A DNA stretch of 64,000 nt, taken from positions 162,304-226,303 of IMG/VR virus record IMGVR_UViG_3300042319_002138. One strand, given 5' to 3'. The notes under the pieces are model-generated. The model ran no database searches. It saw only the letters and a list, made by a program, of their open reading frames with translations, and had not been told where the DNA came from. Shown piece by piece: positions 10,139 through 58,388 of this stretch; the stretch's first letter is position 1; the number at the start of each line of letters is the position of its first letter. A program made the position numbers and the translations under genes.

Positions 10139-10729
10139 ATGAGTTATACAAGAGAACAAATTGAAACAGCAGTTAAATCAAAAGGATACGTTTGGTTTGA
10201 AGGCACTAAAGATTACGATGTGAACATTGTAGGGGTAAGAAATTCCGCTACTGGAGATAAAGTTACTAATGTATTTGATGATACAATGACTATATCTTAT
10301 AAAGAAAATGGTGAATGGAAATTCCGCACTTGGTCATGTACAACAGACCCAGGTAAAAAAGGGGTTATGGAGTATCATAACGCAGCTGGTGTAGCTAGAT
10401 TAGTGGAAGGTCAGTACAGAGGTTCACACACAATTAGATTACACCAAGGTAAGTATGAGGCGTTAGGTCAAGCAAAGAATGTTAAAGTTTATCGTGATGC
10501 TAATCGTGATATGAAATATGATGAGACTAAAATTACTGAAGGTGTTTACGGTATCAATATTCATAAAGCAGGTGCTGATTCTACTTACGTAGAGAATTGG
10601 TCAGAAGGTTGTCAAGTATTTAAAAAATCAGCTGATTTTGAAGAATTTATGAAAATCTGTAGAAAAGCTAAAGATATTCATGGAAATTCATTTACCTACA
10701 CTCTTATTGAGTCAAAAGATATTGTTTAA
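10139..10729 (+). CDS. Putative peptidoglycan-acting enzyme (GINIH...WSEGCQV, L,D-transpeptidase-like His/Cys pair)
   Basis: His in 'GINIHK' and Cys in 'SEGCQV'; adjacent to lysozyme. Confidence 0.55.
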   Translation: MSYTREQIETAVKSKGYVWFEGTKDYDVNIVGVRNSATGDKVTNVFDDTMTISYKENGEWKFRTWSCTTDPGKKGVMEYHNAAGVARLVEGQYRGSHTIRLHQGKYEALGQAKNVKVYRDANRDMKYDETKITEGVYGINIHKAGADSTYVENWSEGCQVFKKSADFEEFMKICRKAKDIHGNSFTYTLIESKDIV

Positions 10730-10783
10730 CAATATTTAAACAGTAAACCTATAAATCTAAGAAATAGTCATTAATATTAATAA

Positions 10784-11263
10784 ATGGGTAAAATTAATAA
10801 GATATCAAAGACTATAGATTTTATAGAGTACATATCAAAAAATATGGAAAAAGACGATTTAATGTTGTTATATAAAATTAATAATATAACACAAGAAAAA
10901 TTAGAGTTATTTTTCGATTTTATATACTCACTAAATGAGTTAGTTTTAACTACATATATGGGTGATGATGTTACTATCGGTGAAGAAAAGAATAATCATT
11001 TTAAATGGTGTTGGTCAAAAGTGATTAGTTCCTTTAAAGAAGAGAGAATCTACTTCATCGATGTAACAGAATTATTTAATTATTTTAAAGAGTTTTATAA
11101 AGAATCTTTTTATTACGAAGAAGATAAAGATATTGATAGTACAAAAAAGATAACCGAGTTTTGGGGACAGTTGTTTGATTTTAGTAAAGGTAAAACAATG
11201 TCTGAATATGAAACTCTTTTAGAACTCTACAAAATATTTAATAAAAGTTTTGTAGTAAATTAA
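10784..11263 (+). CDS. Hypothetical protein
   Basis: ORF only. Confidence 0.6.
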   Translation: MGKINKISKTIDFIEYISKNMEKDDLMLLYKINNITQEKLELFFDFIYSLNELVLTTYMGDDVTIGEEKNNHFKWCWSKVISSFKEERIYFIDVTELFNYFKEFYKESFYYEEDKDIDSTKKITEFWGQLFDFSKGKTMSEYETLLELYKIFNKSFVVN

Positions 11264-18573: not shown

Positions 18574-20016
18574 ATGTCAAGATTAACTGAAGCATTACAA
18601 ACTGAAAACACAACCACTAAGAACGGGATGGAAACTAATTCATCTTCTCTTAATGAGTGTGTTAACCTTTTCTTCTCCATTGGAGCAATGAGAGGTAAAA
18701 GTTCTGAGAGTGTTGTAAAACTTTTCTCAAAGGCTTTCAGTGAAGAACCAACTACAGCATTAAGAATCCTTTTTTGGGCAAGAGATGTTAGAGGTGGTGC
18801 TGGTGAGAGAAAAATCTTTAGAGATATTTTATCTTACCTAGTTGATAACTACTCAAAAGTAGTTAAAGTTAATCTTAACTTAATTCCTGAATACGGGAGA
18901 TGGGATGACGTTCATATCCTTTTCGGAACTGAATTGGAAAATGACGCCATCACACTTCTTGTAGAAGGTTTAAAAAGTGGTAATGGTTTATGTGCTAAAT
19001 GGATGCCCCGTAAAGGTTTGGTATTTAATAAAGTACGTAAAGCACTTAAGTTGGACCCAAAATCCCTTAGAAAATTACTTGTGTCTTTGTCAAACACGGT
19101 AGAACAAAAAATGTGTTCGAAAAGTTGGGCAGAGATTGAGTATTCAAAGACACCATCTTTGGCTATGTCAAGGTATACAAAAGCTTTTGGCAGAAACGAC
19201 CAAGAAAGATTTGGTCAATTTATTGAAGCCCTTCAAAAAGGTGAAACTAAAGTTAACGCCGGAGCTTTGTATCCTTACGATGTTACCAAGAATCTTAGAT
19301 TCGGTAATAAAGATTTGGCTAATGAACAATGGAAAGCCCTACCAAATTATATGGAAGGTTCAACAGAACTTGTCCTACCTTTGGTTGACGTTTCAGGTTC
19401 AATGGATTGTTCGGTAGGAGGTAATCCAAACCTTACATGTATGGAGGTGGCTATTTCTTTGGGTATGTACATCTCTGAAAGAAATGAGGGAGCATTTAAA
19501 GATATGTTTATGACATTTTCTTCAAATCCCGAAATTCAAAAATTGATGGGTCCACTTAGTGACCGTTACAATCAATTAGCTAGAGCTAAATGGGGTATGT
19601 CAACTAATTTAGAAGCAGCGTTCAAGACTATCTTGAATCAAGCAGTTAAATTTGGTGTTCCACAGGAAGAGATGCCAACAAAGATTCTTATCCTATCCGA
19701 TATGGAGTTTGATTCCGCTACTAGTAGTGGTTGGGGAAATGAATCTGATTGGAATCCCTCGGCTATGTCGATGATTGATGAAATGTACACTAACGCTGGT
19801 TATGTAAAACCTGGAATTATTTTCTGGAACCTACATTCCAACGGGGGTAATTTCCCAGCAAGATTTGATGAGGTTGGAACTGCTTTAATTAGTGGTTTCA
19901 GTCCATCAATCTTGAAATCGGTTCTGAATAATCCTAACAGTTTAACACCTGTTAATATTATGAATGAAACCGTACATTCAGAAAGATATGAACCTGTAAA
20001 GGTTTGGATTCTTTAA
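18574..20016 (+). CDS. DUF2828-type Ro60/TROVE-like protein with vWA domain
   Basis: 'FWARDVRGGAGER', 'PEYGRWDD', 'AKWMPR', MIDAS 'DVSGSM', 'ILSDMEFD', 'IIFWNL'. Confidence 0.8.
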   Translation: MSRLTEALQTENTTTKNGMETNSSSLNECVNLFFSIGAMRGKSSESVVKLFSKAFSEEPTTALRILFWARDVRGGAGERKIFRDILSYLVDNYSKVVKVNLNLIPEYGRWDDVHILFGTELENDAITLLVEGLKSGNGLCAKWMPRKGLVFNKVRKALKLDPKSLRKLLVSLSNTVEQKMCSKSWAEIEYSKTPSLAMSRYTKAFGRNDQERFGQFIEALQKGETKVNAGALYPYDVTKNLRFGNKDLANEQWKALPNYMEGSTELVLPLVDVSGSMDCSVGGNPNLTCMEVAISLGMYISERNEGAFKDMFMTFSSNPEIQKLMGPLSDRYNQLARAKWGMSTNLEAAFKTILNQAVKFGVPQEEMPTKILILSDMEFDSATSSGWGNESDWNPSAMSMIDEMYTNAGYVKPGIIFWNLHSNGGNFPARFDEVGTALISGFSPSILKSVLNNPNSLTPVNIMNETVHSERYEPVKVWIL

Positions 20017-26154: not shown

Positions 26155-26364
26155 ATGGAAATAATTGATTATACTTGGTTCACAACATCCCAAACAGTTG
26201 GTATTGTTTTAGTTAAAGACCCCTATGATGGGTATAAAGCATATATTGGTGTGGCGAAGGGTGGTAACGAACTTGACGATGTTACCCATATTACAAAATG
26301 GGGGAGTAGTTTCCCTATCGAAGCGGCAAAAAAATTATTTACACACATAAATTTTACAAATTAA
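26155..26364 (+). CDS. Hypothetical protein
   Basis: TATCTTTG promoter upstream. Confidence 0.6.
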   Translation: MEIIDYTWFTTSQTVGIVLVKDPYDGYKAYIGVAKGGNELDDVTHITKWGSSFPIEAAKKLFTHINFTN

Positions 26365-26394
26365 TTGACAATTTAAAAACTTTTATTATCTTTG
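26365..26394 (+). promoter_or_regulatory. Bacteroidota-type promoter for leader 1 / tRNA cluster 1
   Basis: TTGACA at 26365 and -7 element TATCTTTG at 26387. Confidence 0.75.
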
Positions 26395-26423
26395 TAACAT
26401 ATTTAATTAATAAGAATAAAAAA

Positions 26424-26534
26424 ATGATAACAAATAACATACATATCAGCAATCGTAATCAGTGGTATCAGCCGTGTTTTATTAACAATGGTAAGGGTAT
26501 GTTATGTGTAAATGGAAGTGAGGAAATAATTTAA
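26424..26534 (+). CDS. Leader peptide 1 (36 aa, MITNNIHISNRNQWYQPCFINNGKGMLCVNGSEEII)
   Basis: Short ORF between promoter and terminator; codons mirror tRNA cluster 1. Confidence 0.8.
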   Translation: MITNNIHISNRNQWYQPCFINNGKGMLCVNGSEEII

Positions 26535-26560
26535 TCACAGAAGTAAATAAAAATATAACA

Positions 26561-26590
26561 AACCCAATTCCAAAAGAGTTGGGTTTTTTG
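26561..26590 (+). terminator. Attenuator terminator of tRNA cluster 1
   Basis: AACCCAATTC-caaaa-GAGTTGGGTT plus T-tract; competing pairing 26495-26505 with 26555-26565. Confidence 0.8.
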
Positions 26591-26604
26591 TTTATAAAAA
26601 AAAA

Positions 26605-26678
26605 CGATGTGTATATCAGTTGGTTAGATAGACACTCTGATAAGGTGTAGGTCGGAGGTTCGAGCCCTCCCACATCGA
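26605..26678 (+). tRNA. tRNA-Ile(GAU)
   Basis: Cloverleaf; anticodon loop CTGATAA. Confidence 0.93.
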
Positions 26679-26718
26679 CAAAAAAGAAAAAGTTCTTTGA
26701 TGTATTGGTATTAGTAAT

Positions 26719-26791
26719 GACTCAGTAGCTCAATTGGTAGAGCTCCACACTGTTAATGTGGCCGTTACAGGTTCAAGTCCTGTCTGAGTCG
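26719..26791 (+). tRNA. tRNA-Asn(GUU)
   Basis: Cloverleaf; loop CTGTTAA. Confidence 0.93.
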
Positions 26792-26794
26792 CTG

Positions 26795-26915
26795 AGGTTG
26801 ATTGGGGAATGATATAACGTTAACGTGTCAGTAGTCGTGGTTATATCGGAGTTGTAACTGTCCGAGTAAAGCCAATCGTAAAAGGGGATGTCCACACAAC
26901 CATCTTCCCCTTTCC
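26795..26915 (+). ncRNA. Candidate structured RNA between tRNA-Asn and tRNA-Tyr
   Basis: GATTGG/CCAATC, GATATAAC/GTTATATC and GGGGATG/CATCTTCC stems. Confidence 0.5.
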
Positions 26916-26921
26916 TAACTT

Positions 26922-27002
26922 GGGAACTGAAAGTCGTTTGGATACGGCAGCGAAACTGTAAATTTCGTCCTCGCGGGAGTGGTTCGAGTCCACCAGGTCC
27001 CA
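26922..27002 (+). tRNA. tRNA-Tyr(GUA), atypical D arm
   Basis: Loop CTGTAAA, T arm GGTTCGAGTCC, acceptor GGGAACT/AGGTCCC. Confidence 0.75.
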
Positions 27003-27070
27003 CAAAAAAAAATAAATGTAATATAAGTGGATTTTAACTCTGTTTGTTATATTTATAATAAAAGAATATT

Positions 27071-27520
27071 ATGAAACAGAGAGAAGTTAAAATTACTGAT
27101 GAAGAAATAAAGTTGGCATATGACAAATACGACACACTACATCAGGCATCCGCAGAATTAAAAATGACTACTGTGTCATTATGGAGAAGGGCAAAAAAAA
27201 TTGGTTTAGCCTGGAAAGATAAAAACTTTAAACCTGAACAACAAAAAATACCTTTAAACGAGATTATAGAAGGTAAACATCCGTACTACCAAACCTTAAA
27301 ATTAAAAAAAAGGTTATTGAAAGAAGGGGTTAAAGAAAATAAGTGTGATATTTGCGGTATAATAGATTGGAATAATATAGAGTTATCAATGCAATTAGAC
27401 CATATTGATGGTGACTCACACAACCACAAATTGGATAATTTAAGGATGGTTTGCCCTAACTGCCATTCACAAACAAACACTTATTGTGGTAAAAATAAAA
27501 AAATCAAAGCGGAAATTTGA
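27071..27520 (+). CDS. HNH homing endonuclease inside tRNA cluster 1
   Basis: 'KCDICG...QLDHIDGDSHNHKLDNLRMVCPNCH'. Confidence 0.9.
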   Translation: MKQREVKITDEEIKLAYDKYDTLHQASAELKMTTVSLWRRAKKIGLAWKDKNFKPEQQKIPLNEIIEGKHPYYQTLKLKKRLLKEGVKENKCDICGIIDWNNIELSMQLDHIDGDSHNHKLDNLRMVCPNCHSQTNTYCGKNKKIKAEI

Positions 27521-27550
27521 AAACAACATGTCTTCCTGTATATTTTATAC

Positions 27551-27622
27551 GCGTCTTTGGTGTAATTGGTAGCACGGCTGGTTCCAACCCAGTCGGTCAG
27601 GGTTCGAGGCCTTGGGGATGTG
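27551..27622 (+). tRNA. tRNA-Trp(CCA)
   Basis: Loop TTCCAAC; G-U-rich acceptor. Confidence 0.8.
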
Positions 27623-27627
27623 CAAAT

Positions 27628-27703
27628 GGTGATGTAGCTCAGTTGGTAGAGCAAAGGACTGAAAATCCTTGTGTCGAAGGTTCAATTCCTTCCATCACCA
27701 CCA
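27628..27703 (+). tRNA. tRNA-Phe(GAA)
   Basis: Loop CTGAAAA; encoded CCA. Confidence 0.95.
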
Positions 27704-27707
27704 TTAT

Positions 27708-27782
27708 AGGGTAATGGACTAATTGGCAAGTCACCACGTTTGGGACGTGGGCATCGTGAGAGTTCGAGTCTCTCTTACCCTA
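27708..27782 (+). tRNA. tRNA-Pro(UGG)
   Basis: Loop TTTGGGA. Confidence 0.9.
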
Positions 27783-27790
27783 CTATACAA

Positions 27791-27863
27791 TGTCCTATGG
27801 TGTAATTGGCAACACGTCGGTTTTTGGTACCGAAGAGTCGAGGTTCGAACCCTTGTGGGACAA
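27791..27863 (+). tRNA. tRNA-Gln(UUG)
   Basis: Loop TTTTGGT. Confidence 0.9.
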
Positions 27864-27869
27864 CAATAT

Positions 27870-27943
27870 GGTGTTTGAAGCATTAAGGTGATGTACTAGT
27901 TTGTGGGACTAGGAAAGACGGGTCGGTACCGTCCTTACACCCA
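27870..27943 (+). tRNA. tRNA-His(GUG), non-canonical T loop
   Basis: Loop TTGTGGG; G-1 extended acceptor; T loop GTCGGTA. Confidence 0.75.
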
Positions 27944-27947
27944 AAAA

Positions 27948-28037
27948 GGAAAGGTGGGTGAGTGGCTAAAACCAACAATCTGCTAAGTTGTCGTACCTGT
28001 AAGGGTACCGAGGGTTCGAATCCCTCCCTTTCCTCCA
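27948..28037 (+). tRNA. tRNA-Ser(GCU)
   Basis: Loop CTGCTAA, long variable arm, CCA. Confidence 0.93.
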
Positions 28038-28040
28038 TAT

Positions 28041-28112
28041 GTGGATGTGATGTAACGGTTAACATGAGACTCTTATACAGTCTTCTCGGTGGTTCAACTC
28101 CACCCATCCATA
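28041..28112 (+). tRNA. tRNA-Ile(UAU)
   Basis: Anticodon arm AGACT-CTTATAC-AGTCT. Confidence 0.8.
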
Positions 28113-28117
28113 CTATT

Positions 28118-28191
28118 ACACTCTTAGCTCAATGGATTAGAGCACAACGTTACGGACGTTGGGGTTGGTGGTTCGAGTCCATCAGAGTGTA
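28118..28191 (+). tRNA. tRNA-Arg(ACG)
   Basis: Loop TTACGGA. Confidence 0.9.
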
Positions 28192-28200
28192 CAATAATAA

Positions 28201-28271
28201 GGCACCATGCCCGAGTGGTTAGGGGTCGGTCTGCAAAACCGCTTACATTGGTTCGAACCCAATTGGTGCCT
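28201..28271 (+). tRNA. tRNA-Cys(GCA)
   Basis: Loop CTGCAAA. Confidence 0.92.
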
Positions 28272-28354
28272 CTATCTTTAATTTCTTTTATATTCAATAT
28301 AGGCCCAAACACCAACAAATATTGGGGTTAGTATAGCAATAACTATTTCTGTAT

Positions 28355-30562
28355 TCATCGCATAATTGTTAAATGTCCTGTTATCATTTTACGTGAGTCA
28401 TCATACTCAGACCCATACATTATTCTCCAAACATAAATCCCATCAAAACACATTTTATTATTATAAGTACCATCCCAACCAACGGTATGATTGTATGATT
28501 CAAAAATTGTTTCACCCCATCTATTGAATACCAATAAATTATAATCATAGACATCAAACCCATCAGTAAATATTGGTAACCAAATATTGTTGAAAGCATC
28601 ACCATCGGGGGTAAATGTATTAGGTATATAAATTAATTCTTGTGGACATTCTTGTATTGCTATATTAGCTTGTTCTTCATTAGAAACACAACCATTAACC
28701 GTTTGGGAAACGCTAATTGTATAAAAACCAACATTATTCCAAACATAAGGTAAACTATTATCTTGTATTGTATCACCTTCAACAACCCAATCAAACAACC
28801 CAGATAAAGATGAATAAGCTGTATAGATTCTAAAAATACTATCACCTTCACAAAGTTGGTTAAATTCATATGAAGGTGTTACAGATGTTATGATTGGTTG
28901 TGGGTTTACAATAACGTTGATTGTTGTATCAAATGGGCAATTACTTTGTGTATATGTATAAGTTACATCATTGTTTGTTATGATACCTTGTTGTGGGCAA
29001 AATTCATCAGTCTGAACCCCATTGACTAAGAAAGTACCATTTAAAGGTGAACCCACTAAATCTACACAACCATCATAATCACAAAAAGGACCAATAGGGT
29101 CTATTGTAGGGTTTATGTTTAAAATAAATGTAGTGAAGTAAGAGGTATCACTATTACAACCAATAGGACTAGTAGAATAAACACTTATAGAGTCTTGATA
29201 TAAACCACTAGGTTCTAATGACCAATCCGTTGTTATATTATCAGTACCTTGACCATTTATTATTTGTGGTGTTGTAGACCATATGTAGTTGTAACCAACA
29301 CCCATAGAAGGTACACTATAACTTTCTGATGTTGATAAATAACATACCGTATCAGGACCACTAATAGGTGTCATTATTATTTGTGCTGGGTTAGTGAGTG
29401 TTGCATTACCTGTTACGGTACAACCTATACCGTCTGTAATTAAAAAACTATAATTACCATAACAAAGGTTAGTGGGGTTAAAAGTTGTTTGTAGAGTATT
29501 CCAAGAAATAGTAGTGACACCATTGGTTCCGTTAGGGATTACATTAATACTACCATCACAATAGTTATAACAAGTTGGGTCAATAAAAGTAATTGTAGGT
29601 TGTGGTAAGTTAGGTGGACCAGGTTGTACAAACACCGTATCAGGTCCTGGACCGGCAATACTATTACAAGTATTCCATCCAACATTACAAGAAGGATATA
29701 CTAGTTGACAAGTATAATTAGCTCCTTGTACAGGTGGTGTAACCGTAATGGACGCACCAACCCCAATTGGATTTGGGTTACCTACAATATACCATGTTGG
29801 TACAGGTAAAACAGTTGGTCCACTTGGAGTGTATCGGTACGCATCATTATTTGCTGTCCATTGTGTGGAATTCCTACCTGGTACAGTTATCGCCACGGTT
29901 CCTGTGGTATTATGTAATCCTTGAACCGCGGTACCTCCCGCCCAAGCTAGACAGTTTGGTTTTGATTGAATATAATTTTCTATTACGTTTGTTGATTCAT
30001 AAATCACTGTATGAAATGTCCCCAGTAAATTTGTACATGAAAACATAGGGACACCAACCCAACTAACAACTAATTTTCTACAAGGTGCTGTACCTTGAAC
30101 TTGGTACCTAATTTGCCCACCTAAACCTGGGTGCCAATCTTGCCAAGGACCCATGACACAATTTTTTGGTACTGTACCCGCACCATTAGGTATTGTTGCT
30201 GAAGTAAATGTTGTTGGTTGTGCCGGTGAAAAAGAAATCCAACCGTTAGAACCAACCCAAAATTGATTGTATGTTTGTCCAAAGAAACAAAATGTAAACC
30301 CAATATTAAAAGGACCTTGTTGTGAATCATCCGACATAAATAATTGTGTACCAGTATTTGTTTGTGTTACATAAGGAATATTTGTAACACCGTAGTTTGT
30401 TGTTTGATTTGGATTTGAACCTGGTCCACATTGACTAAAATCGGCAGTTAATGTTGTTGACCCAACACCACAAGGTAGTATTTGGTCTGGTCCTAAATAA
30501 GGACAGTATTGTGAATAGGTCACAAAAGAAATTAGTATAAAAAGGTATTTAATTAAGTTCAT
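28355..30562 (-). CDS. Secreted adhesin-like protein with T9SS type B (gliding motility-associated, CHU_C) C-terminal domain
   Basis: Signal peptide ending YSQ; C-terminal 'YIPNTFTPDGDAFN...VFNRWGE...GWDGTYN...GIYVW'. Confidence 0.88.
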   Translation of the reverse strand: MNLIKYLFILISFVTYSQYCPYLGPDQILPCGVGSTTLTADFSQCGPGSNPNQTTNYGVTNIPYVTQTNTGTQLFMSDDSQQGPFNIGFTFCFFGQTYNQFWVGSNGWISFSPAQPTTFTSATIPNGAGTVPKNCVMGPWQDWHPGLGGQIRYQVQGTAPCRKLVVSWVGVPMFSCTNLLGTFHTVIYESTNVIENYIQSKPNCLAWAGGTAVQGLHNTTGTVAITVPGRNSTQWTANNDAYRYTPSGPTVLPVPTWYIVGNPNPIGVGASITVTPPVQGANYTCQLVYPSCNVGWNTCNSIAGPGPDTVFVQPGPPNLPQPTITFIDPTCYNYCDGSINVIPNGTNGVTTISWNTLQTTFNPTNLCYGNYSFLITDGIGCTVTGNATLTNPAQIIMTPISGPDTVCYLSTSESYSVPSMGVGYNYIWSTTPQIINGQGTDNITTDWSLEPSGLYQDSISVYSTSPIGCNSDTSYFTTFILNINPTIDPIGPFCDYDGCVDLVGSPLNGTFLVNGVQTDEFCPQQGIITNNDVTYTYTQSNCPFDTTINVIVNPQPIITSVTPSYEFNQLCEGDSIFRIYTAYSSLSGLFDWVVEGDTIQDNSLPYVWNNVGFYTISVSQTVNGCVSNEEQANIAIQECPQELIYIPNTFTPDGDAFNNIWLPIFTDGFDVYDYNLLVFNRWGETIFESYNHTVGWDGTYNNKMCFDGIYVWRIMYGSEYDDSRKMITGHLTIMR

Positions 30563-31479: not shown

Positions 31480-33405
31480 ATGGATAAAAATTTTTACATT
31501 AATAAATTAAATAAAACTTTAATTTCACAAACACATAACCCTCTTTTTTATAAAGGGGATATAGTAGAAGGTTCTAAAATTCTAACTAAAGAAGTTGTAG
31601 ACTCAATTAATGTTGATAGATGTTCTATATGGTTATACAACAAAAATAAAACATCTATTGTTTGCCAACAATTATATGTTAAATCTGAAAATATGTGGTA
31701 TGATGGTTTAGAAATCTTTGAAAAGGATTTTGGACCGTATTTCGAAGAATTAATAAAGAACCCAATAATAATAGCTAATGATGCTGAAAAACATCCAGCA
31801 ACATCTTGTTTTACTGATGGTTATTTAAAACCACTGGGTATTAAATCTATGTTAGATGTACCTATCATTTATTTTGGGGAAACTATTGGTGTTATATGTA
31901 TTGAAAGTTTTACATTACGTGAATGGGATTCTTTTGAGGTTGATTTTACTCAATTATTATCTTCTTTATACACTTTTGCTTATTCAATAAAAGAAACAAA
32001 CAATTTAAATAAAAAAATAGAAGAAACAGAAAAATTTATTGACGTATCGACAATTATATCTACTGCTGATAAAAGAGGTAAAATTACATATGTTAATAAA
32101 AAATTTGAGGATGTTTCTGGGTGGTCTTTGGATGAGGTAGTTGGTAAAGACCATGTTATTGTTAATTCGGGATTACAACCTGATGGATATTGGGGTAAAA
32201 TGTATGAAACGGTAATGAAAGGTGATGTATGGAATGACGTTGTTACCAATAAAGGAAAATCAGGAGAATTATATTACGTTGATACTTTTATTAGAGCAAT
32301 TTTTGATACCGATGGTAAATTGGATGGATTTGCTTCAATAAGACAAGATGTTACAGAACTTAAAAAAAAGGAAGTTGAAATTCGCAATAGAATGAACGCG
32401 ATAAATAAATCTAACGCAGTTATTGAGTTTGATTTAGAAGGAAACATCATTTTTGCTAATAATTTGTTTTTAGAAACTATGGGATATTCTTTACAGGATG
32501 AAGTAGTTGGAAAACACCATAGAATTTTTATAGATGAGGAATACTCAAAAAGTGAAGAATACTCTCTTTTTTGGGAAAAATTAAATGAAGGGGTGTTATT
32601 TACCGGTGAAATTACTAGAATTAAAAAAGACGGTTCTTTAGTGTATCTACAAGCAACATACAATCCAGTTATCGGTTTAGATGGTAAGGTTTATCGTGTT
32701 ATGAAAATCGCGACAGATATCACCAATTCCTACGAACAAAAGAAAGAAATTGAAAAGAAAAACACTTACCTAGAACATGCGGCTAAAATATTAAGACACG
32801 ATATGCATTCAGGTATTAATACTTATATGCCAAGAGGATTAAGTTCTTTAGAAAGAAGATTAACCCCCGAAGATATTAAAACTTTAAAAATTGAGGCCCC
32901 AATTAAAATGATTAAAGAGGGTTTAAAACATTCCCAAAAAGTATATAAAGGGGTTTACGAATTTACAAATCTTGTAAAGAAAGATGTTGTTTTAAATAAA
33001 ACGGAATGTAATTTAAAAGATATACTTGAGGATTATTTATCAGCGACAGCATATAGTAGTCAAGTTATTATTGATGAGTTACCAACGATAGAAGTTAATG
33101 AACCATTATTCTGTACCGCAGTCGATAATTTAATTCGTAATGGGTTAAAGTATAATGATAGTAATACAAAATTTGTTAAAATATATATGGAAGATGGTAA
33201 TCTAATTATACAAGACAACGGTAGAGGGATTACACAAAAAGATTTTATTCATTTATCCCAACCATATACCAGAAAAGAAGGCCAAAAAGAATCTGGAACT
33301 GGTCTAGGGCTTAATATATGTGTAGCTATTTTAGAAGAACATAAATTTAATATTTCGTGTGAGAAAAATGACATAGGGACAAAAATGAAAATTGAACTAA
33401 AATGA
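31480..33405 (+). CDS. Cytoplasmic sensor histidine kinase (GAF-PAS-PAS-HisKA-HATPase)
   Basis: GAF 'MLDVPII..GVICIE'; two PAS/PAC; H box 'RHDMHSG'; N box 'DNLIRNGLKY'; 'DNGRG'; 'GTGLGL'. Confidence 0.93.
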   Translation: MDKNFYINKLNKTLISQTHNPLFYKGDIVEGSKILTKEVVDSINVDRCSIWLYNKNKTSIVCQQLYVKSENMWYDGLEIFEKDFGPYFEELIKNPIIIANDAEKHPATSCFTDGYLKPLGIKSMLDVPIIYFGETIGVICIESFTLREWDSFEVDFTQLLSSLYTFAYSIKETNNLNKKIEETEKFIDVSTIISTADKRGKITYVNKKFEDVSGWSLDEVVGKDHVIVNSGLQPDGYWGKMYETVMKGDVWNDVVTNKGKSGELYYVDTFIRAIFDTDGKLDGFASIRQDVTELKKKEVEIRNRMNAINKSNAVIEFDLEGNIIFANNLFLETMGYSLQDEVVGKHHRIFIDEEYSKSEEYSLFWEKLNEGVLFTGEITRIKKDGSLVYLQATYNPVIGLDGKVYRVMKIATDITNSYEQKKEIEKKNTYLEHAAKILRHDMHSGINTYMPRGLSSLERRLTPEDIKTLKIEAPIKMIKEGLKHSQKVYKGVYEFTNLVKKDVVLNKTECNLKDILEDYLSATAYSSQVIIDELPTIEVNEPLFCTAVDNLIRNGLKYNDSNTKFVKIYMEDGNLIIQDNGRGITQKDFIHLSQPYTRKEGQKESGTGLGLNICVAILEEHKFNISCEKNDIGTKMKIELK

Positions 33406-34016
33406 TAAAACTAAAAAATTTATTAACCATATTTTTCATAAGTATGGTAAGTATAGTGTATTCACAACCAACCTACCCTATCCAGACACAATTAAAAGGT
33501 GATTCTGTGGTTATTCTTACAAAAAAACAATCTGATGATATTAATTCACTAATTGAGAATCAAAAAATTAGAATACAAAAATATAAAACAGAAATAAAAT
33601 TAGTTAATGATACTAACACGTTATTAAATAACGATATTAAAATAAAAGATAGTGTTATTAACCAATTGGATAGTTTGTTAACCGTCCAAAACAATTATTA
33701 CGATAGTTTAATTTCTAAAATAGATACGTTAGAGAATTGGATTTTATCGTCGTCGATAGATAATGGGTACCTATATTATTCTTGGCAAGACTCAACAGTT
33801 AAAGTTATTGATTTAAGTTTGTATATGTTAGTATCGCATAGAGGAAGTGGTAATTATAGTTTAATTACAAGAGGTGATGTTACTAATATATATTATTGGA
33901 AACAAATAAATCTACTTAAAGAAGAAAGTCCTGAGATTGGTTGGGAATTAAATATATCCCCAAAATATAAACCAAGAATAGTATTATTCCCATATAAATT
34001 AACCCCAAAATTATGA
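33402..34016 (+). CDS. Secreted coiled-coil protein in two-component locus
   Basis: Signal peptide ending YSQ. Confidence 0.6.
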   Translation: MIKLKNLLTIFFISMVSIVYSQPTYPIQTQLKGDSVVILTKKQSDDINSLIENQKIRIQKYKTEIKLVNDTNTLLNNDIKIKDSVINQLDSLLTVQNNYYDSLISKIDTLENWILSSSIDNGYLYYSWQDSTVKVIDLSLYMLVSHRGSGNYSLITRGDVTNIYYWKQINLLKEESPEIGWELNISPKYKPRIVLFPYKLTPKL

Positions 34017-35416
34017 TAAAAAATATTTTAATAACAATAATGTTTTTGGGTTTTTTTACTTCTTTAAATGTAAATTCACAGACTGATAATAACCCCAAAA
34101 AAACAGAGATTGAACCTACATGTCCTAGTGATAGTCGTATAACTAGTTTAATTAAAAAATTAAATTACGAACCAAATAAAAAATTAACTAAATACCAATC
34201 AAGCTTATGTCAAGAAATTGGTATCTCTTTTTATAATAAAGGTATGTATGATGAGTCAGATTGGTATTTAGATAAGGTTAGTACCTATATTGATGTTGTT
34301 GATTTAAAACCTGAAAAAGTTTTTGACACACCTAAAGAAGAACCCGTACAAGAGTTAAGTGACTCAGAATTATCTAGTATTAAAGCCGACCAAAAATTTT
34401 TAGATGACCTACCAAAATCATACGATAATTTATCTAAAAAAGATATAAAAAAAATTGCTGATGAGATAGAGTCAAAACTCCAAAAACTATTAAAAGAAAA
34501 AAAAGAATTATTAAAAAATAAAGCTAGTCAAGAAGTTATCAGTTCTAAAACAAGTACTATACAAATATTAGGTAAAGAAAAAAATATCATTAATCTTAGT
34601 GTTAAAAATGATGATTTAGTTACCGATAAAAAAACCTTAAAAAAATATTTATGGTGGTCCACAATTGTTCTTTCTGTTTTGGTTTTAGGTATTATTGTTT
34701 TATTACAAAGAAAAACAATTAAAGTCCAAGACATAGAAATCGAAAACCAATTAAAAGACATTAACAAGAAAAACACTTACCTTGAATATGCGGCTAGAAT
34801 AATTAGACACGACATGCATTCAGGTATTAACACCTATATACCAAGAGGGTTATCGTCATTAGAAAAAAGAATTTCAATTGAGGAAATGAATAACTTAAAA
34901 ATTACACCCTCAATTAAAATGATAAAAGATGGTTTGGCACACACACAAAAAGTATATAAAAGTGTTTATGAGTTTACAAACCTTGTGAAAAATACTGTAG
35001 TTTTAGATAGAAATATGGTTGATATAAAAGAATCTTTATTAAAATACTTAACAAATACATCATATAAAAATCAGGTAGAAATTAGTGAATTAGTTACACT
35101 AAATGTAAATGAAACTCTTTTTTGGAACGCTATTGATAATTTAATTAAAAATGGGTTAAAATATAATAGTAGTGAAAATAAAGAAATTAAAATTTACATG
35201 GATAATAATGATTTAATTATTGAAGATAATGGTGTTGGATTTTCACAAAAAGAGTTCGAAAGAACAACAGGTGAATATTTAAATAAAAAGAGTAATTCCG
35301 AAGTTGGTTTAGGTTTAGGTATAACCAAAACAATTTTAGAAGAACATGGTTTTAGTATGATGTGTGAAAAAATTAACACTGGTACAAAAATAACGGTTAA
35401 ATTAAATAAAAATTAA
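34013..35416 (+). CDS. Membrane sensor histidine kinase
   Basis: Signal peptide, periplasmic domain, one TM, H box 'RHDMHSG', 'DNLIKNGLKY', 'DNGVG', 'GLGLG'. Confidence 0.9.
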   Translation: MIKNILITIMFLGFFTSLNVNSQTDNNPKKTEIEPTCPSDSRITSLIKKLNYEPNKKLTKYQSSLCQEIGISFYNKGMYDESDWYLDKVSTYIDVVDLKPEKVFDTPKEEPVQELSDSELSSIKADQKFLDDLPKSYDNLSKKDIKKIADEIESKLQKLLKEKKELLKNKASQEVISSKTSTIQILGKEKNIINLSVKNDDLVTDKKTLKKYLWWSTIVLSVLVLGIIVLLQRKTIKVQDIEIENQLKDINKKNTYLEYAARIIRHDMHSGINTYIPRGLSSLEKRISIEEMNNLKITPSIKMIKDGLAHTQKVYKSVYEFTNLVKNTVVLDRNMVDIKESLLKYLTNTSYKNQVEISELVTLNVNETLFWNAIDNLIKNGLKYNSSENKEIKIYMDNNDLIIEDNGVGFSQKEFERTTGEYLNKKSNSEVGLGLGITKTILEEHGFSMMCEKINTGTKITVKLNKN

Positions 35417-36541: not shown

Positions 36542-36572
36542 TTTGACAATTAATAAACTTTTACTATATTTG
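36542..36572 (+). promoter_or_regulatory. Bacteroidota-type promoter for leader 2 / tRNA cluster 2
   Basis: TTTGACA and TATATTTG; flanking sequence closely resembles the leader-1 promoter. Confidence 0.75.
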
Positions 36573-36614
36573 TACCATATTTAATTAATACGAACAAAAA
36601 TTTTTATAAATTCA

Positions 36615-36716
36615 ATGAAAACAACAATGACATACAAACAAGGGACCGTTAAAACGGTTGATGGGAAAGTGGATTCACTTTTCTACGGACATGGGTTGTC
36701 ATACTGGAGTTGTTGA
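36615..36716 (+). CDS. Leader peptide 2 (33 aa, MKTTMTYKQGTVKTVDGKVDSLFYGHGLSYWSC)
   Basis: Short ORF between promoter and terminator; codons mirror tRNA cluster 2. Confidence 0.8.
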   Translation: MKTTMTYKQGTVKTVDGKVDSLFYGHGLSYWSC

Positions 36717-36741
36717 TTTGAATTTACTCTATATATAGAAT

Positions 36742-36773
36742 AACCCTGGGTCCAAAAGATTCAGGGTTTTTTG
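36742..36773 (+). terminator. Attenuator terminator of tRNA cluster 2
   Basis: AACCCTGGGTC-caaaa-GATTCAGGGTT plus T-tract. Confidence 0.8.
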
Positions 36774-36799
36774 TTCTTTGATATATCGGTTTAAAAAAA

Positions 36800-36889
36800 G
36801 GAAGGGTGGCAGAGTTGGTCTATTGCATCTGATTTGAAATCAGAAGTACCTTTGAAAGGGTACCGTGGGTTCGAATCCTACCTCTTCCT
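36800..36889 (+). tRNA. tRNA-Ser(UGA)
   Basis: Loop TTTGAAA, long variable arm. Confidence 0.93.
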
Positions 36890-36896
36890 CATAAAT

Positions 36897-36968
36897 GGTC
36901 CATTGGTGTAGTGGCCAACATACATCCCTGTCACGGATGTGCCGCGAGTTCGATTCTCGCATGGACCG
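36897..36968 (+). tRNA. tRNA-Asp(GUC)
   Basis: Loop CTGTCAC. Confidence 0.92.
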
Positions 36969-37009
36969 CAACTAACCATAAATCCTAGTAACCCCTAGGT
37001 TGGTTAAAC

Positions 37010-37082
37010 AGTTCCTTAGCTCAGCTGGGAGAGCAACTCGCTTACATCGAGAAGGTCACAGGTTCGAACCCTGTAGGAACTA
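37010..37082 (+). tRNA. tRNA-Val(UAC)
   Basis: Loop CTTACAT. Confidence 0.92.
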
Positions 37083-37091
37083 CAATAAATT

Positions 37092-37166
37092 GCCTCATTA
37101 GCTCAGCTGGCTTAGAGCGTCTGATTTGTACTCAGAAGGCCGTGGGTTCGATTCCTACATGAGGCT
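37092..37166 (+). tRNA. tRNA-Thr(UGU)
   Basis: Loop TTTGTAC. Confidence 0.92.
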
Positions 37167-37228
37167 CAATTAATAACAAACAAATAAAAACGTCAGATTA
37201 TGGAAAGTGGCAAGTATGGCAAACACAA

Positions 37229-37300
37229 TCCCTCGTAGCAAACAAGTGTAGGCAACGGACTTTTAATCCGTGGGGCTGGGAGCGTTACCCGGCGGGGGAA
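37229..37300 (+). tRNA. tRNA-Lys(UUU), non-canonical T loop
   Basis: ACGGA-CTTTTAA-TCCGT; T arm CTGGG-AGCGTTA-CCCGG; 7-bp acceptor. Confidence 0.75.
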
Positions 37301-37308
37301 CAAAACAC

Positions 37309-37378
37309 ACCGAGGCTTAGTGGTAAAGAACTATCTCTCATAAGGATGGTCAAGTGGGTTCAATTCCCATACTCGGTA
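37309..37378 (+). tRNA. tRNA with CAU anticodon (Met or Ile2), short D arm
   Basis: Loop CTCATAA; T arm GTGGG-TTCAATT-CCCAT. Confidence 0.7.
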
Positions 37379-37386
37379 CATTATAT

Positions 37387-37457
37387 TGCGGCAAGGTGTA
37401 ATTGGTTGCATGGGAGTCTCATAAACTTCAGGGGTGGTTCGAGTCCACAGCACGCTA
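37387..37457 (+). tRNA. tRNA with CAU anticodon, imperfect acceptor stem
   Basis: GGAGT-CTCATAA-ACTTC; bulged acceptor. Confidence 0.6.
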
Positions 37458-37462
37458 CTAAT

Positions 37463-37537
37463 GGGGATATAGTTTAATTGGCTAAAACATCTGATTTGCA
37501 TTCAGAAGATGTCTCGGTTCGATTCCGAGTATCTCCA
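37463..37537 (+). tRNA. tRNA-Ala(UGC)
   Basis: Loop TTTGCAT; G3-U70. Confidence 0.92.
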
Positions 37538-37570
37538 CAATAAAATAACAAAAGAAAAAGAAAGAAATTA

Positions 37571-37690
37571 ATGAAGATAGTGTTAACAGGTAAATTAGAA
37601 TCACATAGAGAAATTTTTAGAGGAGAAAGAGAAAAAAATAAATTGATTAAAAGAATAAAAAAATTTATTTTTAAAAGAAAAAACGCTTAA
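37571..37690 (+). CDS. Small basic ORF inside tRNA cluster 2 (39 aa)
   Basis: ATG 37571 to TAA 37690; not in the ORF track. Confidence 0.35.
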   Translation: MKIVLTGKLESHREIFRGEREKNKLIKRIKKFIFKRKNA

Positions 37691-37734
37691 TAGAACAAAG
37701 TACAAGTTCAGGGTGGGGTGCGGTTCCCACAAAT

Positions 37735-37811
37735 GCGGGTGTAGCTCAATTGACTAGAGTACTAGCCTTCCAAGCTGGGAGTTGCGGGTTTGAATCCCGC
37801 CACCCGCTCCA
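37735..37811 (+). tRNA. tRNA-Gly(UCC)
   Basis: Loop CTTCCAA; CCA. Confidence 0.92.
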
Positions 37812-37812
37812 T

Positions 37813-37895
37813 ACGTCAGTGGCGGAATTGGTAGACGCGTTGGTTTTAGGAACCAATATCGTTAAGATGTGGGGGTTCGACTCCCCCCTGACGTA
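37813..37895 (+). tRNA. tRNA-Leu(UAG)
   Basis: Loop TTTAGGA, long variable arm. Confidence 0.93.
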
Positions 37896-37938
37896 CTTTT
37901 ATTTTGCCAATTAAACAATAACCCTTATATTTGTAATT

Positions 37939-43432: not shown

Positions 43433-43486
43433 GAAAAAGATTTGGTAGATTAAAAAAGATTACTTACATTTGTAAGACAAACAACG

Positions 43487-43915
43487 GGGGTAGGAAGTTA
43501 GAGATGAGTGTCCTACTCCCGTGACAAAAAGAAAAAGTTCTTTGACATATTAAAACGGGGACAAGGTAACCACAAACCCACTGGTAATAGGCAGTTCTTG
43601 AGATGGAATGCAAGACAGAACGTAACCCCTACCTTGTTCTTTTTTAAAATATATTGTGGTGGTAAGAAAAGGTGAACTCGTTAAGTTCATAGGCCTGTTG
43701 ACAAAAGATGGTGAAACGAGTGTGGTTGTCGACTACTGCATCACATATATAATACATTGTGTTGTTCCCTTGAGAAAGGAATCAAGAATAAGAGTGGACA
43801 GACTTTAAGCACTACAACACAGAGGACTCAACCTCAAAGAACCTGTACCCTTGAAAAACTCGTTTAAGTAAAGCAGGTTTGCTCCGAAATAAAAGGGTAT
43901 GAGAATAAGGAGTAT
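43487..43915 (+). ncRNA. Tandem array of candidate structured small RNAs
   Basis: Consecutive closed stems: GGGGGTAGGA/TCCTACTCCC, ACAAGGTA/TACCTTGT, TGTGGTG/CATCACA, TGTGTTGT/ACAACACA, and a pseudoknot-like AACCTG/CAGGTT with TACCCTT/AAGGGTA. Confidence 0.55.
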
Positions 43916-43917
43916 TT

Positions 43918-45177: not shown

Positions 45178-45283
45178 AGTCAGGTGGCGGAATTGGTTAG
45201 ACGCTAAATTAACGAGTGGATAGTGTGCCATTGGGGAAGGGCCAAGAAAGTTACACATACAGGTTCAAGTCCTGTCCTGACTA
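45178..45283 (+). ncRNA. tRNA-like RNA (Leu-type D arm, T arm, acceptor AGTCAGG/CCTGACT) lacking a canonical anticodon arm
   Basis: TGGCGGAATTGGTTAGACGC ... ACAGGTTCAAGTCCTGT; the middle does not form a 5-bp stem with 7-nt loop. Confidence 0.7.
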
Positions 45284-45554: not shown

Positions 45555-45635
45555 AGTCAGGTGGCGAAATGGTGACGCCTAAATGAGACCCGTGGGGCGA
45601 AAAGACTCTCGTAGGTTCAAATCCTGTCCTGACTA
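45555..45635 (+). ncRNA. Second tRNA-like RNA with identical acceptor AGTCAGG/CCTGACT and no anticodon arm
   Basis: TGGCGAAATGGTGACGC ... GTAGGTTCAAATCCTGT. Confidence 0.7.
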
Positions 45636-49804: not shown

Positions 49805-49913
49805 ACACAAGTGGTGAAATTGGTAAACACGGGGTGTAACAACTCTGACCGAAAATAATCTACCTTCGGGTCGATAAAAGTAGGTTTTGGAGGTTCGAAT
49901 CCTTCTTTGTGTA
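49805..49913 (+). ncRNA. tRNA-like RNA with aberrant anticodon arm and expanded variable region
   Basis: Acceptor ACACAAG/TTTGTGT, D arm TGGTGAAATTGGTAAACAC, T arm GGAGGTTCGAATCCTTC. Confidence 0.65.
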
Positions 49914-50002
49914 CACTAATCACATAGTATCACTATCATTATCTAGTGAGTAAATAGTAGAGTAAATCTACAGCTATGTGATAAAGTTCTTTGAAATAAT
50001 AC

Positions 50003-57944: not shown

Positions 57945-57995
57945 TTTGATTATTTAATATTTATTCTTATATTTGTAAGAGTTCTTTGAATTATT

Positions 57996-58388
57996 GGGGG
58001 TGTTTTTGGATTTGACTGGTTAACGATTGGTAATGGGTAAGCATGTCGTGAAATAATACTATCACGTTAATACACGTATTGAAACTTCAAACGGCGACGT
58101 ATTCGCAAACGCAACTGTAGGTCACTTTGTGACTGAAGGTGCAACAGTAGCTGCCTAATCATATTAGGTGTTACTACGGGGTCGGCAGACATATAACCTA
58201 GCAACAGAAGTCGTAGTTGTGGTGGATTATCATTGAACCCAAAATCGAATGATACCCATTGTTTGTTGATTTACAATGGTAAATAATAAATCAAATATTT
58301 TGTCCATTTAGATTAAAATGGAATAAGCATGTAGAAGACGTTAGTAATGTAACGCAGGACGAGGGTTCGAAACCCTCCACCTCCACCA
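57996..58388 (+). ncRNA. ssrA: tmRNA
   Basis: GGGGGTG/CACCTCC-ACCA acceptor with G3-U70, T arm GAGGGTTCGAAACCCTC, tag ORF 58093-58158 GDVFANATVGHFVTEGATVAA*. Confidence 0.92.

Follow-up and report, generated by a model that had tools for sequence, protein, structure and literature searches.

A short open reading frame (ORF) in front of a tRNA gene cluster of a phage carries codons for all 11 amino acids whose tRNAs are encoded downstream, and is followed by an intrinsic terminator with a competing hairpin. Based on this dataset, we consider it likely that the element is a ribosome-mediated (leader-peptide) transcription attenuator of a tRNA operon, by which the phage probably makes these tRNAs when ribosomes run short of them, although this is supported by computation only, and both translation of the leader and the response to tRNA supply are inferred. 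Control of this kind is known for amino-acid genes, but no description of it for tRNA genes was found in a literature search that did not cover most subscription journals.

The leader cassette and its tRNA cluster

The window, i.e. the whole stretch of 64 kb that was analysed, is AT-rich and carries 24 tRNA genes and a tmRNA, all on the + strand. Identical stretches occur in IMG/VR viral contigs of 163-226 kb, whereas blastn of the region, of a second cassette (see below) and of a related cassette from public contigs against 50,697 deposited phage genomes displayed only tRNA and HNH matches, so that no cultured relative was found. The proteins of the window include a Ro/TROVE-like RNA-binding protein (phrog_850), two PAS/GAF/HATPase kinase-like proteins, and a PKD-domain protein with a CHU_C (type IX secretion) domain, the last of these directly after tRNA cluster 1. 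Together with the promoter type, this points to a large uncultured phage of a Bacteroidota host, the host assignment being an inference. Coordinates are listed in Table 1.

Table 1. Positions of the features in the 64-kb window.
Feature	Position	Strand	Remarks
Promoter of cassette 1	26365-26394	+	TTGACA (-33-like TTG) at 26365-26370 and TAtcTTTG (-7-like) at 26387-26394, 19 nt apart; start site inferred near 26400
Leader ORF 1	26424-26534	+	36 codons plus stop; A-rich 5'UTR without Shine-Dalgarno sequence
Sensor codons 2-22	26427-26489	+	20 of 21 codons read by tRNAs of cluster 1
Segment 1	26430-26442	+	5' arm of the 1:2 hairpin (anti-antiterminator); pairs with 26497-26509
Segment 2	26495-26509	+	Codons 24-29; pairs either with segment 1 or with segment 3; GGGTATGTTAT at 26495-26505, from the last base of codon 24 to the first base of codon 28
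Segment 3	26553-26565	+	3' arm of the antiterminator, pairs with 26495-26507; ATAACAAACCC at 26555-26565; overlaps the terminator 5' arm from 26560
Intrinsic terminator	26560-26592	+	Stem 26560-26570 with 26576-26586, loop CAAAA, U tract 26587-26592
tRNA cluster 1	26605-28272	+	Ile(GAU) and Asn at 26605-26792; Tyr, Trp, Phe, Pro, Gln, [His-like], Ser(GCU), Ile(UAU), Arg(ACG), Cys at 26922-28272
Structured element	26793-26921		About 125 nt, between tRNA-Asn and tRNA-Tyr
HNH-like ORF	27071-27520		Interrupts tRNA cluster 1
Divergent tRNA-His(GUG) candidate	27871-27942	+	Atypical T loop
Cassette 2	36543-36772	+	Promoter 36543-36572; leader ORF 36615-36716 (33 codons); terminator 36744-36766 with T run to 36772
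tRNA cluster 2	36800-37896	+	Ser(UGA), Asp, Val, Thr, Lys, Ala, Gly, Leu(UAG)
Weak tRNA-Met(CAU) genes	37309-37378 and neighbours		Two, between Lys and Ala in cluster 2
Conserved box GTTCTTTGA..TATT(GG)	26692-26706, 36773-36787, 43537-43551, 49986-50000, 57981-57995	+	Before stable-RNA genes
Region upstream of tRNA cluster 3	43449-43917		Hairpins at 43484-43522 and 43550-43647
Weak, long tRNA matches	45178-45283, 45555-45635, 49805-49913		Rfam
Ro/TROVE-like protein	18574-20016
CHU_C PKD-domain protein	28355-30562	-
Two PAS/GAF/HATPase kinase-like proteins	31480-35416
tmRNA	57996-58388	+

A first-pass annotation of the sequence had proposed an attenuator at this place, with a leader sensing Ile, Asn, His, Ser, Arg, Gln, Trp, Tyr, Pro, Cys and Phe, and with a segment of the leader (codons 24-28) being complementary at 10 of 11 positions to a segment that overlaps the terminator 5' arm. 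This is confirmed, including every coordinate and the 10/11 complementarity, and the interpretation is supported. One qualification concerns His, as neither default ARAGORN nor Rfam reports a tRNA-His, and the assignment rests on a degenerate gene that is found only with relaxed ARAGORN settings. However, this candidate is syntenic and alignable with a canonical tRNA-His in a relative from public contigs (L181; loci from these contigs are given L numbers), and is also syntenic with a normal tRNA-His in L205. The His codon of the leader predicted the presence of this degenerate gene, which standard tools missed.

The 48-nt promoter and 5'UTR block occurs exactly twice in the window, in each case just upstream of one of the two largest tRNA clusters. 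A generic sigma-70 promoter scan was no better than shuffles, and the promoter was therefore read as being of the Bacteroidota type, an assignment that leans on the established TTTG/TAnnTTTG consensus. The leader ORF starts about 24 nt after the inferred start site.

Codon content of the leader

Codons 2-22 of the leader include 20 codons for the amino acids of cluster 1, and all 11 amino acids are present. The single outsider, Thr ACA at codon 3, lies inside segment 1. Among 39,441 stop-free 21-codon windows in all six frames of the 64 kb this is the only one that does so, and an i.i.d. simulation drawing codons from the composition of the window gives 8.5e-6 per window. The genome is AT-rich, and codons for Ile, Asn, Tyr and Phe are common, which may suggest a chance ORF between a strong promoter and a leaky terminator that acts as a constitutive damper or insulator, the codon match being a by-product of base composition. 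In view of the uniqueness of the window, of the corresponding result for cassette 2 with the complementary amino-acid set, and of the frame-specific recurrence of the match in nine families down to codon boxes (see below), this explanation is strongly disfavoured. It should be noted that each sensor codon occurs only one to five times (Asn) and that there are no long tandem runs, so that the sensitivity per tRNA may be low.

Cassette 2 is a paralogue of cassette 1. Promoter, segment 1, the frame of segment 2 and the terminator loop are alike, but the sensor codons differ. Leader 2 is rich in Lys, Thr, Val, Asp, Gly, Ser(UCA) and Leu(CUU), which are amino acids and codon boxes of cluster 2. Of its codons 2-22, 18 belong to cluster-2 amino acids, or 19 if the two weak tRNA-Met genes called by relaxed ARAGORN are included, while the count against the cluster-1 set is 3/21. 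In turn, leader 1 scores 2/21 against the cluster-2 set. The match is not complete, as leader 2 lacks an Ala codon although a tRNA-Ala is present.

Predicted alternative RNA pairings

The full-length minimum-free-energy fold (RNAfold) displays the long 1:2 hairpin plus the terminator (3:4), whereas a transcript cut before the 3' arm of the terminator forms the 2:3 antiterminator instead. Local energies are -18.5 kcal/mol for the whole 1:2 hairpin, -14.8 kcal/mol for 2:3 and -14.7 kcal/mol for 3:4. The antiterminator duplex has -12.1 kcal/mol, against -6.4 +/- 1.7 for codon-shuffled ORFs (p = 0.003).

Folding with a masked ribosome footprint, as had been suggested in the first-pass annotation, was performed for the transcript as it exists before segment 4 emerges, using a footprint of 30 nt at each A-site codon. 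With the A site at codons 2-19 the 2:3 pairs keep a probability of 0.85-1.0, at codon 20 the probability falls to about 0.35, and at codons 21-30 it is 0 for the core G-C pairs (for all three monitored pairs from codon 22). The permissive stall zone therefore coincides with the run of matching codons, which favours the attenuator model. However, without any ribosome, equilibrium folding of the truncated transcript already favours 2:3 (0.76) over 1:2 and does not predict termination by itself. Termination in the unstalled state would hence depend on the order of folding and on the position of the ribosome, as in the classical trp model. We infer from the geometry, and not from the fold, that a ribosome acts as a barrier that no helix can enclose; on that reading, a ribosome at the stop codon lies between segments 2 and 3 with only a few free nucleotides on the 3' side, which also excludes 2:3.

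Related cassettes in public contigs

Exact-pattern scans with the promoter core returned many loci from IMG/VR and from JGI/ENA/TARA metagenomes. Every hit with a tRNA within about 500 nt downstream was kept, without selection on the leader. All of these hits have an ORF of 26-36 codons followed by a hairpin and T run. In the first scan, all 22 promoter copies have an ORF of at least 15 codons, and all 15 distinct cassettes of the viral scans, as well as every promoter copy with a tRNA downstream in the later scans, have one of at least 20. In cellular genomes, where the scan was incomplete, none had a tRNA within about 500 nt downstream, and we thus have no evidence for the cassette there.

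The leaders fall into at least nine families that cannot be aligned with one another. The leader of L215 lists 12 different amino acids in 23 codons, and exactly those 12 tRNAs lie downstream. The L188 leader is rich in Phe, Ala, Glu and Asp (tRNAs Phe, Glu, Asp, Ala), that of L175 in Leu, Val and Cys (Cys, Val and several Leu), that of L166 in Lys, Tyr and Met (several Lys, Tyr, Met), and that of L201 in AGC and UCG Ser codons and AGA and CGC Arg codons (Ser(GCU), Ser(UGA), Arg(ACG), Arg(UCU)). Taking one representative per family, 61 of 64 (cassette, amino acid) pairs with a tRNA in the cluster appear in the first 20 leader codons, against 29 of 116 pairs without one (Fisher p = 1.7e-21), and none of 200,000 random re-pairings of leaders and clusters reached the true pairing. 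For Ser, Arg, Leu and Ile the match holds at codon-box level (34/35 against 27/93, p = 3e-13), and the number of tRNA genes per amino acid correlates with the number of codons (rho = 0.63). Translation of the same DNA in the other two frames drops in-set codons from 73% to 34% and 32%, drops coverage from 95% to 50% and 58%, and introduces stops.

Leader and cluster also change together within families. In family D, codon 17 is CAG in 6 of 6 members without tRNA-Ser(UGA), and TCG (Ser) in 4 of 5 members that can be scored and that carry an inserted tRNA-Ser(UGA). In family B, Glu codons occur in the 5 members with a tRNA-Glu and in none of the 3 without. L010 and L165, whose clusters contain tRNA-Met and tRNA-Ala, have an extra Met codon and an Ala codon in the sensor. 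Exceptions are, however, found. L002, L015 and L016 keep the leader, but the cluster is reduced to Ile, Arg and Cys. In the L002 lineage the family-A leader is unchanged, and the cluster comprises Ile, Arg, Cys and a doubtful tRNA, with a different endonuclease-like ORF occupying the cluster and a visible remnant of tRNA-Asn (L002, about 10650-10800 and the ORF downstream). The lineage of L155, L163 and L011 shows only Gly and Leu, and L150 shows only Glu and Met. These cases look like recent erosion or rearrangement of clusters, but they show that the match is not absolute. Indels between relatives are in frame.

One could suppose that tRNAs pair directly with the codon-like triplets of the leader RNA, as a multi-specifier analogue of a T-box that works without translation, since the triplets match the anticodons of the operon and the choice between terminator and antiterminator exists. 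This appears unlikely. Rfam scans of the whole window (gathering threshold) and of 26300-28400 (E <= 1) found only tRNAs, the tmRNA and noise, with no match to the T-box family (RF00230), to any riboswitch or to any amino-acid operon leader family, and no conserved tRNA-acceptor-binding element was seen. Furthermore, the triplets lie in one uninterrupted frame that starts at an ATG after an A-rich leader and ends at a stop codon at a conserved distance from the terminator, indels preserve this frame, and the other frames lose the match.

Covariation of antiterminator and terminator

The terminator stems differ between families. In every family, the 3' part of the ORF, starting at codon 19-25, is complementary to the 5' arm of the terminator of that family. 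Summed over nine terminator types, the duplex energy is 8.6 sd below codon-shuffled ORFs (z = -8.6), and only 2 of 362,880 re-pairings do as well. A terminator is present in all 15 cassettes examined, the stop codon lying 24-36 nt before the terminator arm and the ORF comprising 28-36 codons. Pairings comparable to 1:2 appear in most other cassettes, but are weak or absent in some, such as L134. Within family A, the terminator stem shows a compensatory A-U to G-C change (L002 and L007), while segments 1, 2 and 3 stay identical although the ORF tail and spacer diverge.

Promoter, ORF and terminator might alternatively form a self-contained small-protein gene, with the peptide as the functional product and the tRNAs being transcribed from a separate downstream signal. 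The unit has its own promoter and terminator, the N-terminal part of the peptide is conserved within families, and a conserved 17-nt box (GTTCTTTGA..TATTGG) lies before the next tRNA in many cassettes, usually between terminator and first tRNA. In relatives, its first T lies 26-27 nt before the 5' end of the next tRNA, usually once per operon. In the window the box occurs five times, always on the + strand and always before stable-RNA genes, including just before the tmRNA. If the box is a second promoter for stable RNAs, part of the tRNA transcription would bypass the attenuator, while a processing signal would be neutral to the model. Nonetheless, the small-protein explanation is improbable. 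The nine unrelated peptide sequences share no motif, but each lists its own downstream tRNAs, and the C-terminal parts diverge freely except where they pair with the terminator arm, a complementarity that has no role in such a model. In cassette 1 the box lies after the first tRNA, and three families lack it altogether.

Proposed mechanism and comparison with known systems

Every sequence-level prediction of a leader-peptide attenuator that senses the tRNAs of its own operon was borne out when tested. We hypothesize that transcription starts near 26400 from a host-type promoter, and that a ribosome translates the leader while RNA polymerase moves on, with codons 2-22 sampling, once to a few times each, the codons read by the tRNAs encoded downstream. 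If all are decoded quickly, the ribosome would reach segment 2 or the stop codon before the terminator is finished; segment 2 then cannot pair with segment 3, the 3:4 hairpin forms, and transcription stops at about 26592. If any sampled aminoacyl-tRNA is scarce, the ribosome would stall at codons 2-19, which disrupts the 1:2 hairpin and leaves segment 2 free to pair with segment 3, so that the terminator cannot form and the tRNA genes are transcribed. With no translation at all, 1:2 would form first and termination follow. The result would be demand-driven negative feedback on the supply of exactly these tRNAs.

The element would work like the leader-peptide attenuators of enterobacterial amino-acid operons (trp, his, leu, pheA), and most like the multivalent thr and ilvGMEDA leaders, which also sample several amino acids. 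Shared with these are a promoter-proximal short ORF and an intrinsic terminator before the first gene, mutually exclusive 1:2, 2:3 and 3:4 hairpins, regulatory codons placed so that a stalled ribosome would free the antiterminator, and, as inferred here, termination in the absence of translation. On the other hand, the regulated genes here are tRNAs instead of biosynthetic enzymes, and the leader samples 3 to 12 different amino acids, mostly one to three times each, its content following the gene content of the operon down to isoacceptor boxes. The setting is large uncultured phages with Bacteroidota-type promoters and initiation without a Shine-Dalgarno sequence, and there is no sequence similarity. 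The pheM leader attenuator of the Escherichia coli pheST (phenylalanyl-tRNA synthetase) operon appears to be similar in target, as it adjusts a component of the translation machinery to the supply of a charged tRNA, but it senses one amino acid through a run of Phe codons and regulates a synthetase, not the tRNA genes themselves. T-box riboswitches likewise key a terminator or antiterminator decision to the status of a specific tRNA through codon-anticodon recognition; however, they bind uncharged tRNA directly, without a ribosome, each senses one tRNA, and they have a Stem I specifier loop and the conserved T-box sequence, none of which is present here. Arrays of tRNA genes, often interrupted by homing endonuclease genes, are known from large phage genomes (T4, T5, large myoviruses, mycobacteriophages), but within the literature searched no leader-peptide attenuation was found described for any of them.

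It is probable, though not certain, that large phages of Bacteroidota autoregulate their tRNA operons by such 'roster' leader peptides, which would test, codon by codon, the supply of exactly the tRNAs encoded downstream. The phage tRNAs would then be made on demand, for example when host tRNAs are depleted by host shut-off or cleaved by anticodon-nuclease defences, and the content of the sensor would evolve in step with the gene content of the operon. Within the literature searched, this would be the first case of tRNA genes under ribosome-mediated attenuation. Why phages carry tRNAs at all, and how their expression is regulated, is still debated, the main proposals being codon compensation, replacement of a degraded host pool, and escape from tRNA-targeting defences. 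A phage that measures decoding speed for its own tRNA codons, and tops up supply only when needed, would make this question directly testable. The cassette would also represent a natural experiment in regulatory co-evolution and a possible synthetic-biology part for reporting on tRNA supply, and could serve as an annotation rule, since the leader predicts which tRNAs an operon contains or has recently lost.

Other elements near the tRNA clusters

The structured element between tRNA-Asn and tRNA-Tyr of cluster 1 is conserved in L002 with four compensatory pair changes and has no Rfam match. The weak or over-long tRNA-like matches, i.e. the two tRNA-Met genes in cluster 2 and three Rfam matches elsewhere, could be degenerate or intron-containing tRNAs. 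Upstream of tRNA cluster 3 there is no leader cassette. Instead, a promoter-like TTTG..TAcaTTTG, a strong hairpin, the conserved box, a hairpin of about 90 nt ending in a T run, and about 270 nt of unassigned sequence are found, which are possible small RNAs.
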